63,915 bases of DNA, filler included, from Perkinsus chesapeaki ATCC PRA-425 (GCA_013115145.1; 7 parts of 7 records of this genome joined end to end with filler, not necessarily neighbours in it); one strand, 5' to 3'. Shown: positions 2,163 through 12,109, counted from the whole stretch's first letter. The notes: a model not told the origin generated them from the letters alone. A program made the numbers and translations.

Positions 2163-3884
2163 GGTCCGAGGATTCTGCAACCTATCAGTGTGATGAGAAA
2201 AGCGAATTCTCCTCGACAGGAAAACAGCCTCTCCAGCGAGGTGAATACGATTTCGAGTTTTCCTTCGCGTTCTGTTTCCTTCCACTTTTCAACACAAATT
2301 CTATCCCCATAGAAATCTCAATAACAAGTTAAATTCGACCAAGTAGCAGAAGCTCAGCATTTGTTGACTATCGTCTATTCCTCTTCCTCAATATCATCAT
2401 CAGATGACTCTGAACGGTCCCCTGCCTGCTCTTCGCCTTGCAGCGTCGCTGCGGCCATCTCCCCCAGTAGAGGCGGTGCCTCAGTGTAAACAGCTTGCTC
2501 GGTCACGCTCCCTTCCGGCACCTAATAAATTTATCGAAACACTTGGTGTGTTTAATAATTTCCATGTATGTGGCAGCTCTCAGATACCCAAGCATCGCGC
2601 TAAACATAAAGTTTTGTCTTTTACTTTTAATATATCTCCATAATTACATATACGCTGCTTTTGCATTCGTTGTAGAAGTCGGTAAAAAGTGTCACGTTAA
2701 CATGGCCGAGCTAGAGTGCAACCTCGGTTACTATCGGACAAGGGGGGTCGACTGGTATAACCTTCAGCCAGTTCGTCTGGAAACGAGCGACCGTGAAAAA
2801 ACAACAACCATCATCAATCACCGTTCGTTCACTGTTGTACATTAAACATATTTTGAATACCGTTATCTTATCTGTGTTGCTCTTGTTTCTGATAACAACT
2901 TTTTCTTTGCGTGATTGCGTATGAGTGATGCGATGAGATATAATGTAACCTCCCTTTGTTGAGCGTTCTATCATATCGAGGAGCTTTACGCCTCTGGTGA
3001 AAGCAAGGTGGGAGAAATTCTTACAGAAAACCTACTACACCACCAGACAGAGAAAATTGCGTCTTAATGTTTCAAGCGCTTTGCACTTGAAAACTCGGTC
3101 TCATTTTCACCACTTGCCTGGGCCTTAATACTGGGGACTTATTAAGAAATTCTAACAGACGTCAGCTTACAGGATCGACTCTTCTAGTCCTGTTTTTGCC
3201 CCCAGTATGAGCAATAGCGATCGAGTACGCTCTATTGAGCACTTGGTGGTCCTTGGTTGCCAGTACACTACTGCCATACCTGAAACATACAACGACGTGC
3301 TTAATCATCACCGGACTCGTAATTGACTTCTTTCATTGGTAACATATTTCCTATCAAACTCCTTTCTATTATATCTCCTCCGTATCACTACACCATTTCA
3401 AGATATTATTAGTAAAAGCCCAGACCAATTTCGTGATGAGAGTGGATGGAGGCTCAATCCACCATCAGATATCTATTCTGCGGTGAATGCTTGATACGCC
3501 TCATCTGTCATCGTTTGCCTCAGTCAATTCTCATCACTTCCCACGTGATGACGGGGGTTAGTAACCTATGTCATCACCTCGGTAACCTCATCTTACCCCG
3601 TCAAAGGCAATAGGTTGATCACAATTCATGACTCACAATCGGCGGAGTTCTTCGGACCAAATGGGTTGCGGCCTGCAACCCATTTACCGTACGTGATGCA
3701 CATGTGCGTGAAATGGTATAGGTGGCTCCATCGACATCATGGTTGCTAAATTGATCTGGATTATATTAATTTGTTCTGGGCTTTCACTAATTTGATCTTG
3801 GCTTTTACTAGTTAGATCTTGAAATGGTGTAGTAAAACGTTCTCATATCGACTCCTGACGTCCCTCTATTCCAAACATGTCCCG

Positions 3885-6280
3885 CTAAGGAAGCTGTACG
3901 TACGAATCTCCGCGCAAGTATCCAACATTCACGCCCCCACATAATCCCCACAAACCTACTTCGACAGTATATCCATACCACTCATCATCACTGCATATGA
4001 GCTCGACGTCATGCTCATCAGGCCAAGGCCATCAGATAGCAGCCACGCAACCGGATACAGAGACCAAGTCACCACTGTGAGATCTGCTATCAAACGGAAC
4101 CTGAATGCCGACCTTACTCGTCGAATTTTTCAACGCAAAATTTCCTCGCCCCAAAACAGTCGACAACTACTACAGGTACATTCGCCAAATGCTGCAAAAA
4201 CTGTGATTCGTCCGCCCGAATTTCAGTGGTAAAATAACAATATCAAGATCGAACTCCACTCGCCCACCTTCCCGCTAGTTCTCTATCTCCATAGCTCTTG
4301 CTGACATCTCTTAACCGATACCCAATATACCATATCAACGGCACCACACCCAGCCCCAAACTTATCGAATATAACGCAACCTTGGCCCACATGGGAGAGG
4401 ACAGAAATAGGGAACCTGAAGACCACCTTGGGAGGGGAAGTAAAAAATGAAAAAATAATGAATGGAAATCAATGTCTTTTACTTTTAATGAGCTTGATGA
4501 AATGCTACTTGAGTAAATTCATTTGTTTACTAACAAAATTTCGGATTGTCAAATGATAGGAACCATCCATCATGAACATCGATAAATTTAACAAAAACAA
4601 CAGCAACGATGATCGAGAAAAATAACAGAAAAAATAACAGAAGAAAATAACAGAAAAAATAACAGAAAAAATAAGAGAAGAAAATAAGAGAAAAAATAAG
4701 AGAAAAAAATAAGAGAAAAAAAACAGAAAAAATGATAGGGGAAAAGGGAATTATTAGTGAACTAGCTTTTCGTAAATATATTTCTTGGTTCAGTCCAGAT
4801 AATGAGATTCTACCCGCAAATCCGATCCCATAAAGTACATACTCATTATTTCCGAATCACGCAGAAGCCGTGAATACACTATCATTGTTATCGTTAATGC
4901 GTCCCATGTTGAATCTAGTATCACTTGCCTTCCCACTTACCAAACTCCCCACCAATCCATATACCATTTGCCACTATAGCAGGCACCACAGCCTTCAGGC
5001 CAGCACCACTCATAAAGCCAGCGTTCACCAACATCAGGGACGAACTAAACGCACAACTCTGAGAGATCAGCCAATCTATCCCCTAGTTGTTCCAGAAAGC
5101 ATTGAAACTTGCCATCCAGCTAAAAGTCTTTGAGATGGACGGAAAGTTTCAGTTTTCTTTGGGTCAAAGAGGACGATATATATCCGAAGCAGTGGCGAGG
5201 CACGGACGACCAATCAATGTTTTTCCTCTTGGTGGAGTGCCATTTTCTCTAACCACACTTCCGACTCATTTCCCCCTCCGCCACAAAGAAGGCTACACAA
5301 CTCCTTCGCACTACCAACTGCCATATCATCACGAGATCGTCCCCAATCTTTCTCGAAATAGATCATCACCACGACTGAACCCGATATGGTAAGACAAACT
5401 AGGCCAGCAACCATTTCAGTGTAGTCCCGAGCAAGCACAAATCCATCCCCCCATATATCACAACTATACAGGCAAGAGATAGGACAGAACAAACTGTAGT
5501 AAATATCCCCACAGCAACAACAACAACAGCTGCCTGACGACTTAAAAAGTGAAATACCTCCCTGCGCCGAAAAGGCATCCGAAATACCCAGTTAATATCA
5601 ATAAGCCGCCGGAAAGGGAGGCAGTGACAACCTTTGAAAAACTTATTACCACAACTTCAGCTACTCTACCAAAATGCGACAAGTCGCCGGTGCGTTTTTT
5701 ACTACTTTTTTCCTGGACCATCACGCCCATTCGAGTTACTCGGGAAGAGATATATTATTACCTCGTAAACCACTCTACATATTTCACCGGGATTATTGAC
5801 ACCACATGATGGCCGAGCAACGATGTACCAGTGAAGACGGGGAACAGGGAGAACAACTAATAACATAAATATAGCACAGTCATGAATATCCAAGCTTCAT
5901 GCGTGCACCCAATAAGTAATTGCCTATACACGGAAAACCTTCAATCTATAACTTGTACCAAATCAAATGACTCTCACACTTCAAAATAACGGATCACAAT
6001 ATTAGAAAATATCCAAGCTTCAAGCGTGCACCATATAATTTATCATCCCAGCTTCCCAGCGCACTGATTTCTTTAACAAACTTTATTTACATAATATCCT
6101 GTCCTGATACCCCCTCTATTACCTGTGCCAGATACCCAAGGGCCGTGGTGCCTGTTACGGCGGCAGCTACATAGTACACCGGCCTACCACTGCCGACTGG
6201 TACTGATCTTCCTCGTCGAATGAAGCCAAGTGATGCTGATAATGAAAAACATACAGAGATAATAATACCAACGGCGGACC
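3885..6280 (-). CDS. Type-1 (microbial) rhodopsin-like 7-TM protein; exons 6280-6123, 5856-5762, 5044-4941, 4415-4268, 4100-~3885; 5' exon and exact 3' end unresolved
   Basis: Phase-compatible GT-AG splicing gives helix B RPVYYVAAAVTGTTALGYLAQ; helix C/D PVKYVEWFTSSSLMLVN...AIVANGIWIGG (gapless vs bacteriorhodopsin RYADWLFTTPLLLLD...ADGIMIG); helix E KVALYSISLG; helix F TVVTWSLYPVAWLLSDGLG (BR TVVLWSAYPVVWLIGSEGAG); helix G MDILSK (BR LDVSAK). TAG follows the Lys codon; adding one A gives KVGLWGL, ending at 3885. Confidence 0.8.
4600..4735. repeat. Low-complexity tandem repeat (AAAAATAACAG / AAAAATAAGAG) inside a rhodopsin intron
   Basis: About 9 near-identical ~11-13-bp units read directly. 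Confidence 0.85.
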
Positions 6281-6339
6281 CTATGGTTTAGGGAGCTGTA
6301 GAGGGATACCGAGAAACGAGCCCGCTTCCCCATGACAAC

Positions 6340-6583
6340 TAGTAACATATTTCCTATCAAACTCCTTTCTATTATATCTCCTCCTCCTCCGTATCACTAG
6401 TAACATATTTNNNNNNNNNNNNNNNNNNNNNNNNNNNNNNNNNNNNNNNNNNNNTTAATTAATTAANNNNNNNNNNNNNNNNNNNNNNNNNNNNNNNNNN
6501 NNNNNNNNNNAACTCCTTTCTATTATATCTCCTCCGTATCACTAGTAACATATTTCCTATCAAACTCCTTTCTATTATATCTC
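6340..6583. repeat. 52-bp minisatellite flanking an assembly gap; solo copy at 3339-3390
   Basis: Unit TAGTAACATATTTCCTATCAAACTCCTTTCTATTATATCTCCTCCGTATCAC is repeated on both sides of the gap and recurs once at 3339-3390. Confidence 0.85.
6455..6466. other. Artificial contig-join spacer (N-run + TTAATTAATTAA + N-run); also at 33101-33112, 55343-55354, 59539-59550, 61252-61263, 62470-62481
   Basis: An identical palindromic 12-mer with stops in all six frames sits inside six N-runs. Confidence 0.95.
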
Positions 6584-9500
6584 GTTCGGCCCAGGAAATA
6601 TATTTTTATCTTATTAGCGTAATTTTCCCATAATTTCGCACCGAGCCTTAATCTCTACATAGGTAGGCTTTCATTTCACATTCGCTGTATTACCGATCTG
6701 TCGAATATAATTTCAGCTATATTACTACTTTACATACAGTCAGATATGAGCTCTCTTTTTCTCGAACAGTCAGGAGCAAATTTAAGATGTCTAATAAAGT
6801 ACAATAAAATCATGCTCATGAATCAACGTAAAGATATTCTTTAATTGTACTCCAAAATATTTTACCTTTGGGGAATCCTTCATCAGGTGTCTTCTGTTGT
6901 TGATAGGGTGGATAGTGTTCTCATTTCGGTAGTGGTTCATATTTTAAAATTATTAACAATTATTTTGCTTGCAGTTTTTTATATTGCTTTTAACAAATTA
7001 TTTGCTTCACGCACATCACTGTCACACGAAGTATAGGTTTCTACCAACGTAATAGTATCTTATATAATCTAAATAGTATTAAGACTCGTATGTTGTCTCA
7101 GAATACATCTCCGCGGACGGAAACATTCGAGCTATTAATATCATCAAGCTTGGTTTAAAAAATTCAATTCCGAGCGTAGTACTAGTTTTAATCTGTCAAT
7201 TTGTATGTTTCTTCAATACGCAGTGATTGTGTCACATGATTAGCTTTGATTCTCAAATCTTCAGGACTAAACCAGTGTGGCGTCCACAAGTGAATGGTGA
7301 ATACGCGCTAGCTGCCGGAGTAGCAGCAGCAGGCCGAGGGGAGGCGTAGTTGAAGAAATGCCCGATCTGGCAAGCTCTAACTATGAGGTCTGTGAAATCG
7401 TCAAGGTTTTGTAGATTTTTCACGGTCGGTTTTGTCCCGATTTTGTGGCCATTTTTACAGTGTGAAAAAAGGCCGCAAAATTTCGACCGAGATAAGGGGT
7501 AATATTTTTTGTTTTAAGGTGTTATTATTCCTGTTTCATCGTACCGTACGGGTTTGTTAGTGTATCTGTAATTAACGGGCGAAATGAAAAAATAAAAACC
7601 TTGAAGTTTTCACACTTCAGATTTGGTTGATCGGGGGTGAGCCGAAAAAGGGGTTGGCACCGGCATGTGTGAGCTATAAAAAAGGAATAATAGAGATTAT
7701 TCAATAAGGGTGATCGAGAAAATATGGCTCTCCGTAAGAGATTGCCAGACGAGCGCAGGTGTCATCTTGGAGCCCTCGTCCAGCTGTTTTCAGAATATGG
7801 CAGTAGTTAGGCGGCATGCGGAAAGAGGTCGACGAGTGTCCCCTTTTTCCATTACTCCTTTCTTCTTTTTTACTGGCCATATATTAGTTACGCATGGTTT
7901 CGAGTATCTTCTGGGTCGTGCGGAATCTAAAAAGTTTTTGTTGAGTGTTGTTTGTTGTTCTCTTATTTCTTGTCTGCACTTCATCGATTTAAGATGCGGT
8001 TTTTCGAACGTCGACACGTCTTTCCTCATGATTGGGAAACATGTAATACTGAAGGGGAAGCGGTGGTCGATTGGTGGGATATACTAGTTGCTGTAGTTGG
8101 GAGTTGCGCATGATCGAGAATTTATTCTAAACGAAGGTATATTTATTGACGTGTTTGACATGTTCTAATAGTTCCATCTCGAAGTCTTTGGCGCTTGTCT
8201 AATCCATGGCGTAACTAGGAAATCCAGGGTCACCTCATCATTGTCCAATGATTCGAAAAAGTACTACTCTCCAAGAAGTACTTTCGGTGAATTCACAGAG
8301 TTACAGTCTGGGACTCCCAGACTCTGGGAGCCCAATCTGTCTGGTGCAGTCTGGTGCTCAAGTCCTCGGCTTCTTTTCGTTGTCTGAGAGGGGATTCTCC
8401 GGCCAGCAACAGCGAAATTAATGAGAGTCGAATCGTCGCTCTCGTGATCTCCGCTTGAACGTTTCCGCGCGAGAGCAGGTGCGCCAGTTCATGCTTCAGC
8501 CCGGGAGCAGCCCGGAGGTCGAGTTTACGGTATATTCCGGGCATAGGCCAGGTGGCCTCCACTTCATTGAGGTACGCCCTATCTAACCACGGGGAACCTG
8601 GTTCCCGGAAACCGGCGATTGGTGATTCCCGGAATCACCAATCGCTGGTCTGCCGAGGAGAGAACCAGCTGGTTCAATCCAAACCGAGATCACGTCATCC
8701 CAAGGACTTTCTCCGTCAAGCTGGGCTACATCGGTACTATCCCAACTATCTCAACCACCCGTACTATCCCGACCGACGACCGCTCCCTTCCCCCCTACCC
8801 TCCGCTTCTCCCCCTCCTGTTCAGTCCGGCCGCGGGGGTAAAACACCCGATTGGGTAAAAAATGTTGAGGAGGGTGGACTCCATGGAGCTTGTCACAGGG
8901 TGGGGAAGGATGCATACAAGCAATTGGGGGTGTGAGAGGAGAAGTTCTGGGAAGCCAACGATGAAAAGGCCGGATAGCAATCAATCTACAACATGGCTCC
9001 CTATCTGACATTACTTAATTTGCATATCCTCTTCTTTGAGAGCTCATGTGATAGTGCAGCTTGATCCAGCAACTGGTATGCTGCTAAGCATCTCTCGATT
9101 GCTGTTCCTTCACAAAAGTACACTAAAATCTCAACGTAGCTCGCGCAGTAGTTACAGTTGTCAGCCGTGTTCATGGTTGTCACTCCATTGTTGTGTTCCA
9201 TGTTACTGTCTCGTGATAGTACGGGCTTTGCCGCATCTGACCGAAAATAAAAACATAGTATGAATTAAAAACTCGCATGTCGTTCTAACAGAATGATGCG
9301 AAAAAATGTGCAGAATACTCTGATTTGACCAAAATTGTTTATTGTCAGGTACGTCAGCTTGGTGGGCGAAGTACCCGAATCCTGACCAACCACATGTTAA
9401 AAGAACAGACACTGTATATCGTAACATAGATAAGGAGGATCAAGTGGGCAATGAGTTGTAAAGTAGATAAATCAGGGCGCATTTCAGGTTCTCCAAGTTC

Positions 9501-10352
9501 GCAGAATTTTCGCGTTAGATTACCAAATTCCAGATTGGATTCAAAAACTGTTGCCGAAAATGCAGGTAGGATCCGCAAGATCGATTGCGTGATCACTTTT
9601 GAGTTAGGGATATGCAATGGAAGACACCACTGTCGATTTAAAAAATAAAAAATTAACTGCTGTCGGTCGGAATCTCTCCTTCAGTAAGCCCGAGGGGAAG
9701 TTGAGGCGGTTTTTATTTCCAATCTCTAGGTAAGATATGCCAATCTCGTGAAGTTATAACGTACGAGCAGGACCCTAACGATCCATCGTAAGTTCGTTAA
9801 CAGCTTCTTGTTTAGATAACGATATTACCCGGGTATATGATGATAGTACCCGGATTCTGGAAGTATTTTTTATAAGTGTTTGTGGACTATGTTTGGAAAT
9901 TGAACGAACTCCCGATCGTTAGCATGTTGTCATATTACGTTAATAGGTATAATTTTCAAAATTATTTACATGACAATTAATATATGAGAAGTAAACTCTG
10001 CCATATCTACGTCATCCATACGGTTAATATGAAACTTGCTGTAGAAAACTCAAGTCCTGTAACGAGGAACTGCATTCTGTAATGTGGATCAATATAAACG
10101 AAATTGATCTCTAAATCGAAGCAGTCTCATACTGTGCGGAAATACGCAGTATCTTGTTAGCACATTCTATAGTGTAGTATATAGTATAGAACCTAGTAAG
10201 TTGTATATAGTACTACCTGTACAGTATACAATCTGTGTAATACGAAGTGGTAAAAATGAGGAATTTGAATCTCTTAAATAATTCACATTGTAATATGTTG
10301 TAGATGTCATCCTGTTTTTTGTTGTTGTTAGTAAAACTATCTATACCCAGCG

Positions 10353-11298
10353 TATGAGTTATTCGATCAATGGCATTGGTGCAGTTCTTGGTCGTAAAGC
10401 GGAGAGGGCAGCAACTGACTTCTCAGCTAAGAAGGCTCAAGCCGGTAAGCATTTCTTGTCTAATAGACGACTGCGTCTAACTCATGTCCATGTCGGGTTT
10501 CATTATAGAAAAGTGCGGTTCTGAAAGACTGCAGGAACTCTATATCGCAGGTATTCAGAATTCGATAGTAGGGTATTAGTCGATATTAATATCCATAGTA
10601 TTCTGGGTCGTTATACACTAACCCTAATAAACCAATGGTTTATTAGGGTTTAAATGAATGGTTAAAACCATACCTGTATACGCATGGCGTATTGCAGAAG
10701 CATCATTTTTCTGGGACCAATATGAGATCCAAGAGCCTTAATTAGGACTTGGGGAAGCACTCGTCGGCTAGGATCGGTCAGGATTTCGCGAAGTTGAGCG
10801 ATTGTCCTGATGTCTCTGGTTATCTCAGGCGATGCTGTTATGACTAAGCGTATTGACAGCTTGGCCGCCACCGATTGGAGAAATGATACGACAACTTGGA
10901 GACAGAATGTGAGTTGTAGAGTTGATCTAACTAATGGTGCTTCCGTATTTTACATTTCTGGATTAATAATCATTTTAATAGCCGTGTTCATATGGATGCA
11001 AGCGATCGTCATCTGGCTTATCTTTGTATATTTCTTAGATAGTTGGTATGCTCAATCTGGCTGTCTCCCATGGACGTCTCACAGCGTCACAGGCATCGGA
11101 TCAGCTCAGAGCGGCTCAGGCTAGATTGATGCGAGCAGCGGGGGATCCGATGGTGGCGAGACTTGGACGAAATGCAGTAAGGGGTCCGTTCAGCACATTT
11201 TCCCGCGTACTTCCCGCTGAAATCTGCTATACTGTGTTGTTATTCAAGTACCTTTCTTGAGCGCTGAGAACCGAAATTTTCAGTTGGACGGAGCAAGC
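10353..11298 (+). CDS. Small hypothetical multi-exon protein
   Basis: Open segments bounded by GT/AG: MSYSINGIGAVLGRKAERAATDFSAKKAQA, GDAVMTKRIDSLAATDWRNDTTTWRQN, IVGMLNLAVSHGRLTASQASDQLRAAQARLMRAAGDPMVARLGRNA. No family recognised; ends approximate. Confidence 0.4.
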
Positions 11299-12109
11299 TA
11301 GCGAGAAGAAATCTCCGGTTCTTCGTGGAGTTAGTCTGCGAATTCATTGAAGTTTTTCATTCGTTGCCGAAGTTGGGTAAAGTAAAGAAGAATTAGTACT
11401 GGAATGGCTTCCATAAACTATTCCTGTATAGTTCCGAGAGCGTCACCTCAGGGAGTCTTGTGTAGGACAGATCGGACCATGTTGTGATTTCAGAATTTAT
11501 TTATAGTTGTCTAACTTTCAAGGTTCGTTGTGAAGATATTCCCGATGATTCGTCACAATCGATCAGCAGGAGCACTGTAGATTCTATCATACCAGAATGT
11601 CCAGATTTCACAGGTGCCATATAGCACCACTCCATTCACTGCCGCTGTTTCTGTCACTCTATATTAGAGTTGACCACCACTGTACTATGATGATGTTTCT
11701 TCGAGCACTGTTAGTCAATTGTTAGTGTCTTTGTCAATCTATTGGGAGCACGTTACGTGGCAAGCTTGGGGAGTGCACACTGCTATTATGCTTTTTCTTC
11801 TTATCGTTCCTCGGGCAGGGCACGGCCTACAAGTCCCTACAGCCGCCGATGCGATCTCTGCGAATGGCGATGTCGTGTTCAGCAGCTAAATCTCAGCTGA
11901 TCATTTCAACGGAGTTGACCACTCCTTTTACAGAGATCATGAATTTTCAATAGTAGTGAATTTTATCTTCTCGTTTGTAGAAGCCCAAATGCAAGGGCAA
12001 ATTCGCATGTTTTCTGAGTCGGCTTAATCCCACGCTCGCAAGCGTTGCTGTTATCAATATCAAGTCGTACTGTGCAAACTGATCAGTTAGCGAACAAGGC
12101 TTATTAGTG

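Follow-up and report, generated by a model that had tools for sequence, protein, structure and literature searches.

A spliced type-1 (microbial) rhodopsin gene lies on the minus strand of a 6410-base nuclear contig of Perkinsus chesapeaki ATCC PRA-425 (GCA_013115145.1). The contig belongs to the stretch of DNA analyzed in this work (the window), which comprises 63,915 nucleotides from seven parts of the genome joined end to end with filler, and positions are counted from its first letter. The last seven exons are present, from 6235 down to 2375, and we put at about 0.85 the probability that they represent a divergent microbial type-1 rhodopsin gene whose 5′ end is cut by the contig edge in a high-copy repeat, and which is already in GenBank. 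In fact, the translation of the seven-exon model is letter for letter that of KAF4651302.1, 'rhodopsin, partial [Perkinsus chesapeaki]'. The gene is annotated in the public record with the same structure and is not new; the literature search returned no paper on a Perkinsus rhodopsin. P. chesapeaki is a non-photosynthetic alveolate parasite of oysters and clams with flagellated zoospores.

The original prediction, made from the sequence alone, had described a hidden gene of five exons between 3885 and 6280, in an intron-rich protist, encoding a complete protein of seven transmembrane helices. A minus-strand multi-exon type-1 rhodopsin gene is present, and its family match, spliced structure and residue mapping all hold; the description of the host also fits P. 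chesapeaki and its spliced gene. The four internal junctions of the five-exon model stand, but both of its ends and its completeness do not, as the gene has two further exons and a 5′ part off the contig. Nor is the gene hidden, since GenBank lists KAF4651302.1 and the name 'Cruxrhodopsin-2, putative' has long been attached to its orthologue in P. marinus.

Family assignment and fold

The spliced product, searched against PF01036 (Bac_rhodopsin) as had been suggested, gave an E value of 3e-15 and 56.8 bits against a cut-off of 24.6, with KAF4651302.1 covering positions 20–218 of the 224 in the profile. The 47-residue exon at 3960–4100 alone matches the same Pfam family above the curated cut-off (E 3.6e-7, 30.3 bits), as well as bacteriorhodopsin (BR) helices F–G in the PDB. 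The segments of the original model, when spliced, encode a hydrophobic protein with the motifs KYVEW...SSSLMLVN, VANGIWIGGEFG, TWSLYPVAW and MDILSK. Copies of the gene in P. olseni also carry PF01036, and the orthologue in that species covers profile positions 4–212 of 224.

The best solved relatives are haloarchaeal proton pumps, led by H. walsbyi BR-I (HwBR; E 6e-13), deltarhodopsin and BR. An AlphaFold2 model of P. olseni residues 236–560 presents seven transmembrane helices at a predicted local distance difference test score (pLDDT) of 70–85, and in Foldseek it superposes on bacteriorhodopsin with a TM-score of 0.82, normalized by target length, and a probability of 1.00. The reviewed proteins nearest to this model are cruxrhodopsins and the fungal opsins CarO and NOP-1. 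The window itself encodes the end of helix A plus helices B–G only. In the model, helix G extends eight residues past the Schiff-base Lys (YGGSTLVT; YGSSVLAT in the window) and is therefore complete; a short helix (DHQVL.RAY) follows it.

PF01036 is the sole domain detected both in the P. olseni protein at full length and in KAF4651302.1, whose C-terminus is complete, and neither carries a fused channel domain or an enzyme domain such as the cyclase, phosphodiesterase or histidine kinase of enzymerhodopsins. In addition, helix B (RPVYYVAAAVTGTTALGYLAQLF) contains no Glu, whereas ChR2 has E82, E83, E90, E97 and E101 in this helix. Enzymerhodopsin, bestrhodopsin and chlorophyte channelrhodopsin types are therefore unlikely.

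An exhaustive HMMER search with the 47-residue exon as query found only two close relatives, a P. olseni protein of 606 residues and a P. marinus fragment of 162 residues; its third match was a repetitive non-rhodopsin sequence and was discarded. Besides Perkinsus sequences, profile searches of a set of 5.8 billion proteins yielded only haloarchaeal proteins resembling sensory rhodopsin III and a single protein from a Tara metatranscriptome (E 6e-5), with no closer eukaryotic relative beyond Perkinsus. The Tara protein (ERR1712137), a marine rhodopsin of 257 residues, is the best match that is neither Perkinsus nor archaeal and shares ADLTVV.W.LYPVAW; it retains R82, D85 and P91 and presents His in the position-96 column.

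Gene structure

The internal junctions 6123/5856, 5762/5044, 4941/4415 and 4268/4100 of the original prediction have GT–AG sites and fitting phases, and the exons that they enclose (95, 104 and 148 nt) have the lengths found in P. olseni. Across the second junction, helix C aligns with haloarchaeal bacteriorhodopsin without gaps. The revised model is given in Table 1.

At the 3′ side, the end placed at 3885 is the stop of another frame, which can be reached only by a frame slip, and the frame of the gene meets a TAG directly after the Lys codon. After ...LDLLSK, the P. olseni protein continues with YGGSTLVTKDHQVLDRAY...AVYTEPPPLLGE; both stretches occur in the window, at 3279–3171 and 2521–2375, behind good acceptors, and the Lys216 codon is therefore split (AA/G) by a phase-2 intron of 680 nt. 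The next frame after the Lys codon reads GLWGLCGGVNVGYL, which could pass for the remainder of helix G. Intron 5, when its start (3885–3959, minus strand) is read two bases out of frame, gives GLWGLCGGVNVGYLRGDSYVQLP and a stop, a mimic of the hydrophobic end of helix G. In P. olseni and P. marinus, no sequence like GLWGLCGGVNVGYLRGDSYVQLP stands behind the donor, which is why we regard the mimic as a coincidence; it probably misled the first reading into the frame slip.

Two other explanations of this site were discarded. A frameshift or sequencing error at AAG/TAG does not agree with an independent k-mer contig, which has the same bases, nor with the orthologues, which have a phase-2 intron and a conserved downstream exon; and the alternative acceptors 3865 and 3854 for the split Lys codon lead to continuations without a homologue. 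The independent contig, from Logan, is identical to 3762–6366 at a depth of 55, and an assembly error at the split Lys codon and its surroundings can thus be discarded.

At the 5′ side, the boundary at 6280 is replaced by an acceptor at 6237–6236, since the orthologous exon has 113 nt in phase 1 and thus starts at 6235, where KAF4651302.1 also starts. This acceptor (...tttttcattatcag/) is the exact counterpart of the P. olseni exon boundary. The additional 45 nt of the original model (6236–6280, minus strand), encoding 15 residues (SAVGIIISVCFSLS), correspond to a polypyrimidine tract translated in frame. Their translation has no similarity to helix A of the P. olseni and P. marinus orthologues, which reads VPN(I/F)IMAATAY(V/I)M(V/I)K, and an in-frame TAA stands just upstream of 6280. 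Judged by these features, the segment is most likely the non-coding 3′ tail of an intron; being in frame, it could possibly be the product of an alternative acceptor. A mini-intron of 29 nt joining an ATG at 6331 to 6280 was rejected, for its phase is wrong and its size is unlike that of any other intron here.

Table 1. Exons, splice sites and intron 5 of the rhodopsin gene, and exons of the downstream HIT/FHIT-like gene
Feature	Position	Strand	Description
First exon on contig	6123–6235	minus	113 nt, enters in phase 1; end of helix A, A–B loop and helix B (SLGFIRRGRSVPVGSGRPVYYVAAAVTGTTALGYLAQ)
Splice sites of first exon	acceptor at 6237–6236	minus	acceptor ...cattatcag/CA; donor CAG/gtaata; length and phase match P. 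olseni exon 13
Exon	5762–5856	minus	95 nt; B–C loop and start of helix C with K82, Y83, V84, E85 and W86; GT–AG sites; length and phase as in P. olseni; tblastn identity 67%
Exon	4941–5044	minus	104 nt; remainder of helix C (S89 S90 S91 ... N96) and helix D (N115, W118, E122); GT–AG sites; length and phase as in P. olseni; aligned to HwBR
Exon	4268–4415	minus	148 nt; helix E and E–F loop; GT–AG sites; length and phase as in P. olseni; 75% identity
Exon	3960–4100	minus	141 nt; helix F (W182, Y185, P186, W189), then helix G as far as bases 1 and 2 of the Lys216 codon (D212 ... AA/); donor AA/GTAGGT after 3960; length and phase as in P. olseni exon 17
Intron 5	3280–3959	minus	680 nt, phase 2; splits the Lys216 codon (AA/G); in-frame TAG at 3958–3956
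Exon	3171–3279	minus	109 nt; base 3 of the Lys216 codon, remaining part of helix G (YGSSVLAT), then conserved juxtamembrane segment (KDHQVLNRAY...); acceptor tttcag/G, donor CCT/gtaagc; matches P. olseni ...SKYGGSTLVTKDHQVLDRAY; length and phase identical
Last exon	2375–2521	minus	147 nt including TAG stop (2377–2375); acidic C-terminal tail with conserved AVYTE.PPLLGE motif; acceptor ttattag/G; 73% identity to P. olseni over this motif; same end as KAF4651302.1
HIT/FHIT-like exon	~2162–2013	minus	
HIT/FHIT-like exon	~1630–1490	minus	
HIT/FHIT-like exon	~1374–1258	minus	
HIT/FHIT-like exon	~763–626	minus	

Conservation among Perkinsus species

The orthologues are KAF4733315.1 of P. olseni, a protein of 606 residues labeled 'ion channel activity', and the P. 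marinus 'Cruxrhodopsin-2, putative' (XP_002785084.1). The six comparable exons have lengths (113/95/104/148/141/109) and phases (0/2/1/2/2/0) identical to those of P. olseni, while the introns of the two species cannot be aligned. Amino-acid identity is 74% to P. olseni (204 of 277 aligned positions) and 60–83% per exon to P. marinus. Between P. chesapeaki and P. olseni, codon positions 1, 2 and 3 are identical at 78%, 92% and 42%. Four-fold sites differ at 66%, the synonymous rate (dS) is at least 1.9 and the nonsynonymous rate (dN) is 0.18–0.22; the resulting dN/dS of 0.06–0.12 indicates strong purifying selection on the spliced reading frame. All three Perkinsus species, which have saturated synonymous sites between them, have in common the motif K82/E85/SSS/N96/N115/W118/E122/D212/K216, a C-terminal tail that is conserved, and a HIT gene downstream of the rhodopsin. 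The copies differ in that of P. chesapeaki being cut at its 5′ end and that of P. marinus carrying W182L at a partly duplicated locus.

These comparisons also bear on whether the locus is a pseudogene or an assembly artefact. Such an origin could be suspected from the stop that follows Lys216 in frame (TAG, 3958–3956), from the first exon having no ATG, and from the high-copy repeats within and beside the gene. On the other hand, the TAG falls within an intron that the orthologues share in position and phase, and the protein resumes in the exons beyond it; the contig edge accounts for the absent start, and the dN/dS speaks against loss of function. We consider this origin very improbable.

The full-length P. 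olseni orthologue (P. olseni stretch 8001–11846) has an N-terminal extension of about 315 residues, which begins with MGCGASS, a possible myristoylation/palmitoylation signal. Its gene has about 12 exons upstream of the one that matches 6235–6123, one of them carrying ...VPNIIMAATAYVMVK. Asp and Glu together make up 28% of the first 235 residues and Ala 18%, and hydrophobic segments at 243–285 and 296–314 precede helix A. These segments hint at an extra transmembrane helix and an eight-helix topology, in a region where the pLDDT of the model is below 50. In P. marinus, a stretch of GG672691.1 presents the helix A–G exons twice (9193–10488 and 12733–14039), about 3.5 kb apart, with upstream exons (residues 238–333) between the copies, which reflects either a partial tandem duplication or a haplotype misassembly. 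The annotation of this locus is split into several short models, and Trp182, as a rule invariant, is replaced by Leu in each of the two copies.

Active site

Residues were assigned by ungapped motif alignment and by HMMER alignment to solved rhodopsins, with the established BR numbering. The residue list of the original prediction (K82, Y83, E85, W86, S89, S91, N96, N115, W118, W182, Y185, P186, W189, D212 and K216) proved right. Ten positions are as in BR: Y57, Y83, W86, S141, W182, Y185, P186, W189, D212 and K216. The motifs KYVEW and TWSLYPVAW, which contribute the aromatic retinal pocket (W86, W182, Y185, P186 and W189), align without gaps to BR and HwBR; and MDILSK, which places D212 four residues before the Schiff-base Lys216, is conserved in P. 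olseni and P. marinus.

The changes relative to BR are R82K, D85E, T89S, T90S, P91S, D96N, D115N, M118W, G122E and W138Y. This pattern of retained and altered positions is shared by the P. olseni and P. marinus proteins, apart from position 182 in P. marinus. Position 96, where BR has its carboxylic cytoplasmic proton donor, is Asn in all three Perkinsus species. The proton-release group is also altered, with Asp at 194, Tyr/Ser at 204 (ungapped register from D212) and Lys at 82. M118W had been listed in the original prediction without comment on its effect, and G122E and W138Y were absent from it. Together, these three substitutions, which lie in the helix D and helix E exons (4941–5044 and 4268–4415), are predicted to reshape the end of the pocket that receives the ionone ring, placing a Trp and a carboxylate there, and they may shift the color or affect the fit of the chromophore.

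Three groups of known rhodopsins can be compared with the Perkinsus proteins. Haloarchaeal bacteriorhodopsins (H. walsbyi BR-I, H. salinarum BR, cruxrhodopsins and deltarhodopsin) are the best solved-structure matches, with E values of 6e-13 to 1e-8 and a TM-score of about 0.8 to the P. olseni model, and share Y57, Y83, W86, W182, Y185, P186, W189, D212 and K216; identity is only about 20–25%, however, and the Perkinsus gene is eukaryotic and spliced and encodes a product with long extensions at both termini. The sensory rhodopsins of haloarchaea (Haloarcula sensory rhodopsin III and SRII) have an identical stretch of 12 residues in helix F (DLTVVTWSLYPV) and also have no carboxylic residue at 96; they are the proteins with the most exact words in common with the query in the set of 5.8 billion proteins. 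They differ in keeping R82, D85 and P91, in an overall identity below 30% and in signaling via Htr transducers, which to our knowledge do not occur in eukaryotes. Finally, the fungal opsins (Neurospora NOP-1, Fusarium CarO and Leptosphaeria LR) belong, as eukaryotic proteins, to the BR-like branch and are among the top fold matches; they differ by a D-T-E/D motif, R82 and P91, are pumps or slow-cycling, and have no long acidic N-terminal extension.

Predicted function

We tentatively favor a sensory or slow-cycling pigment, at slightly less than even odds. Retinal would be bound at Lys216, with E85 and D212 as counter-ions, and would undergo photoisomerization. With no cytoplasmic donor (N96), no release group (no E204) and Lys in place of Arg82, reprotonation and proton release would be slow, and so would the photocycle, which would therefore suit signaling better than energy capture. 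The signal could pass via the conserved cytoplasmic C-terminal tail and the long N-terminal extension known from P. olseni, possibly in free-swimming zoospores; KDHQVL.RAY, AVYTE.PPLLGE and the acidic P. olseni extension are candidate interaction sites.

Several points weigh against a sensory pigment, or against the gene model on which it stands. Position 182 is Leu in P. marinus, and the bulky W118 and charged E122 in the ionone-ring pocket may hinder chromophore binding. Both the start codon and the greater part of helix A belong to the 5′ portion of the gene, which extends past the contig edge and is missing from the window; the window also has no retinal-synthesis gene. Transcription and splicing are inferred from the genomic sequence, the sequencing runs listed comprising a single DNA run and no RNA run. 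Finally, the sensory role is reached by exclusion only, and rhodopsins of the D96N type or without a donor can still pump, as BR D96N itself does.

This last point would favor a light-driven ion pump, which might export protons slowly despite having no carboxylic donor, or might move another ion or work in another direction. Among solved and reviewed proteins, the nearest relatives are proton pumps of haloarchaea and pump-like opsins of fungi, and carboxylates at 85 and 212 are retained together with Lys at 216. Against a pump, N96, K82, the lack of E204 and S91 are conserved in the three species, and elements of efficient pumping by bacteriorhodopsin are thereby removed; moreover, the parasite lives mostly inside host tissue, with little light. 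The absent donor and release group, as read from the alignments, argue against a fast pump of the bacteriorhodopsin type, and we regard a pump of any kind as unlikely, if a serious candidate.

A light-gated ion channel similar to channelrhodopsins is suggested by the Glu at the position-85 site, which is typical of chlorophyte channelrhodopsins, and by a protein-atlas feature search, in which a channelrhodopsin cluster was among the top three neighbors (score 0.91, a lead only). On the other hand, helix B is devoid of the glutamates typical of chlorophyte cation channelrhodopsins, and both sequence and fold searches place pumps and sensory rhodopsins first, so a channel appears improbable.

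The unusual pocket (M118W, G122E and W138Y, plus W182L in P. marinus) could also belong to an opsin-related membrane protein that works without retinal or independently of light, for example as a chaperone or scramblase, in a parasite that seldom sees light; the lack of a retinal pathway gene within the window would be consistent with it. However, opsin-related proteins without a light function generally have no Schiff-base Lys, the loss seen in fungal proteins of the ORP/HSP30 type. In Perkinsus this Lys is present, and Lys216, D212, W86, Y185, P186 and W189 are kept across species with saturated synonymous sites. A light-independent protein is thus about as improbable as a channel.

Beyond the sensory or slow-cycling pigment favored here, the Perkinsus rhodopsins might constitute a functionally new, lineage-restricted class, defined by a Lys82/Glu85/Ser89/Asn96 site, a remodeled ionone-ring pocket and, in the full-length P. 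olseni protein, an acidic N-terminal extension, possibly with eight transmembrane helices, and acting as a zoospore light sensor. We hold this to be speculative and rather unlikely. If it were true, the M118W/G122E/W138Y pocket could give unusual color tuning or chromophore handling.

Repeats and neighboring gene

A repeat resembling a miniature inverted-repeat transposable element (MITE) lies inside intron 5 at about 3339–3839, with inverted arms at 3381–3436 and 3784–3839 that are 84% complementary. Its 43-nt stretch 3339–3381 is repeated exactly, in direct orientation, at 6342–6384, within a repeat copy (6342–6410) at the contig end. In Logan, the summed word depth is about 29,000 for the intron 5 repeat and about 150,000 in the last bin, versus 55 for unique gene sequence; the MITE-like element is a very abundant repeat of the assembly of about 44 Mb. 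The copy at the contig end probably caused the assembly break that truncated the 5′ end of the gene.

Other repeats are shorter. Intron 3 includes, at 4593–4752, a tandem array that is A-rich on the plus strand, with units of 12–13 nt (AATAACAGAAAA / AATAAGAGAAAA) and a GC fraction down to 0.29; intron 1 has a pair of 36-nt sequences, at 5885–5920 and 6008–6043, which are 86% identical; and a 57-nt unit occurs twice in tandem, at 82% identity, at 423–536, downstream of the HIT gene (minus strand). Rfam and tRNA scans of the contig found nothing.

Directly downstream of the rhodopsin stop, on the same strand, is a HIT/FHIT-like gene (~2162–626) with the histidine triad HVHVHV. The order rhodopsin–HIT, on one strand, is kept in all three Perkinsus species. 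Two P. olseni gene models wrongly fuse the two genes, and the HIT domain in those models comes from this fusion.

Significance

As gene discovery, the analysis adds nothing, since the locus was already in GenBank under the right name. The residual interest lies in a strongly conserved and uncharacterized set of motif residues (K82, E85, S89–S91, N96, W118 and E122) in a non-photosynthetic parasite, a combination that, on comparison of sequences, is not seen in characterized rhodopsins. Perkinsus is a commercially important parasite of molluscs and a sister lineage of dinoflagellates. If a pigment forms, it would provide a data point on the contribution of residues 82, 85, 96, 118 and 122 to the function and color of rhodopsins, and it would point to light sensing in Perkinsus, perhaps in the zoospores.

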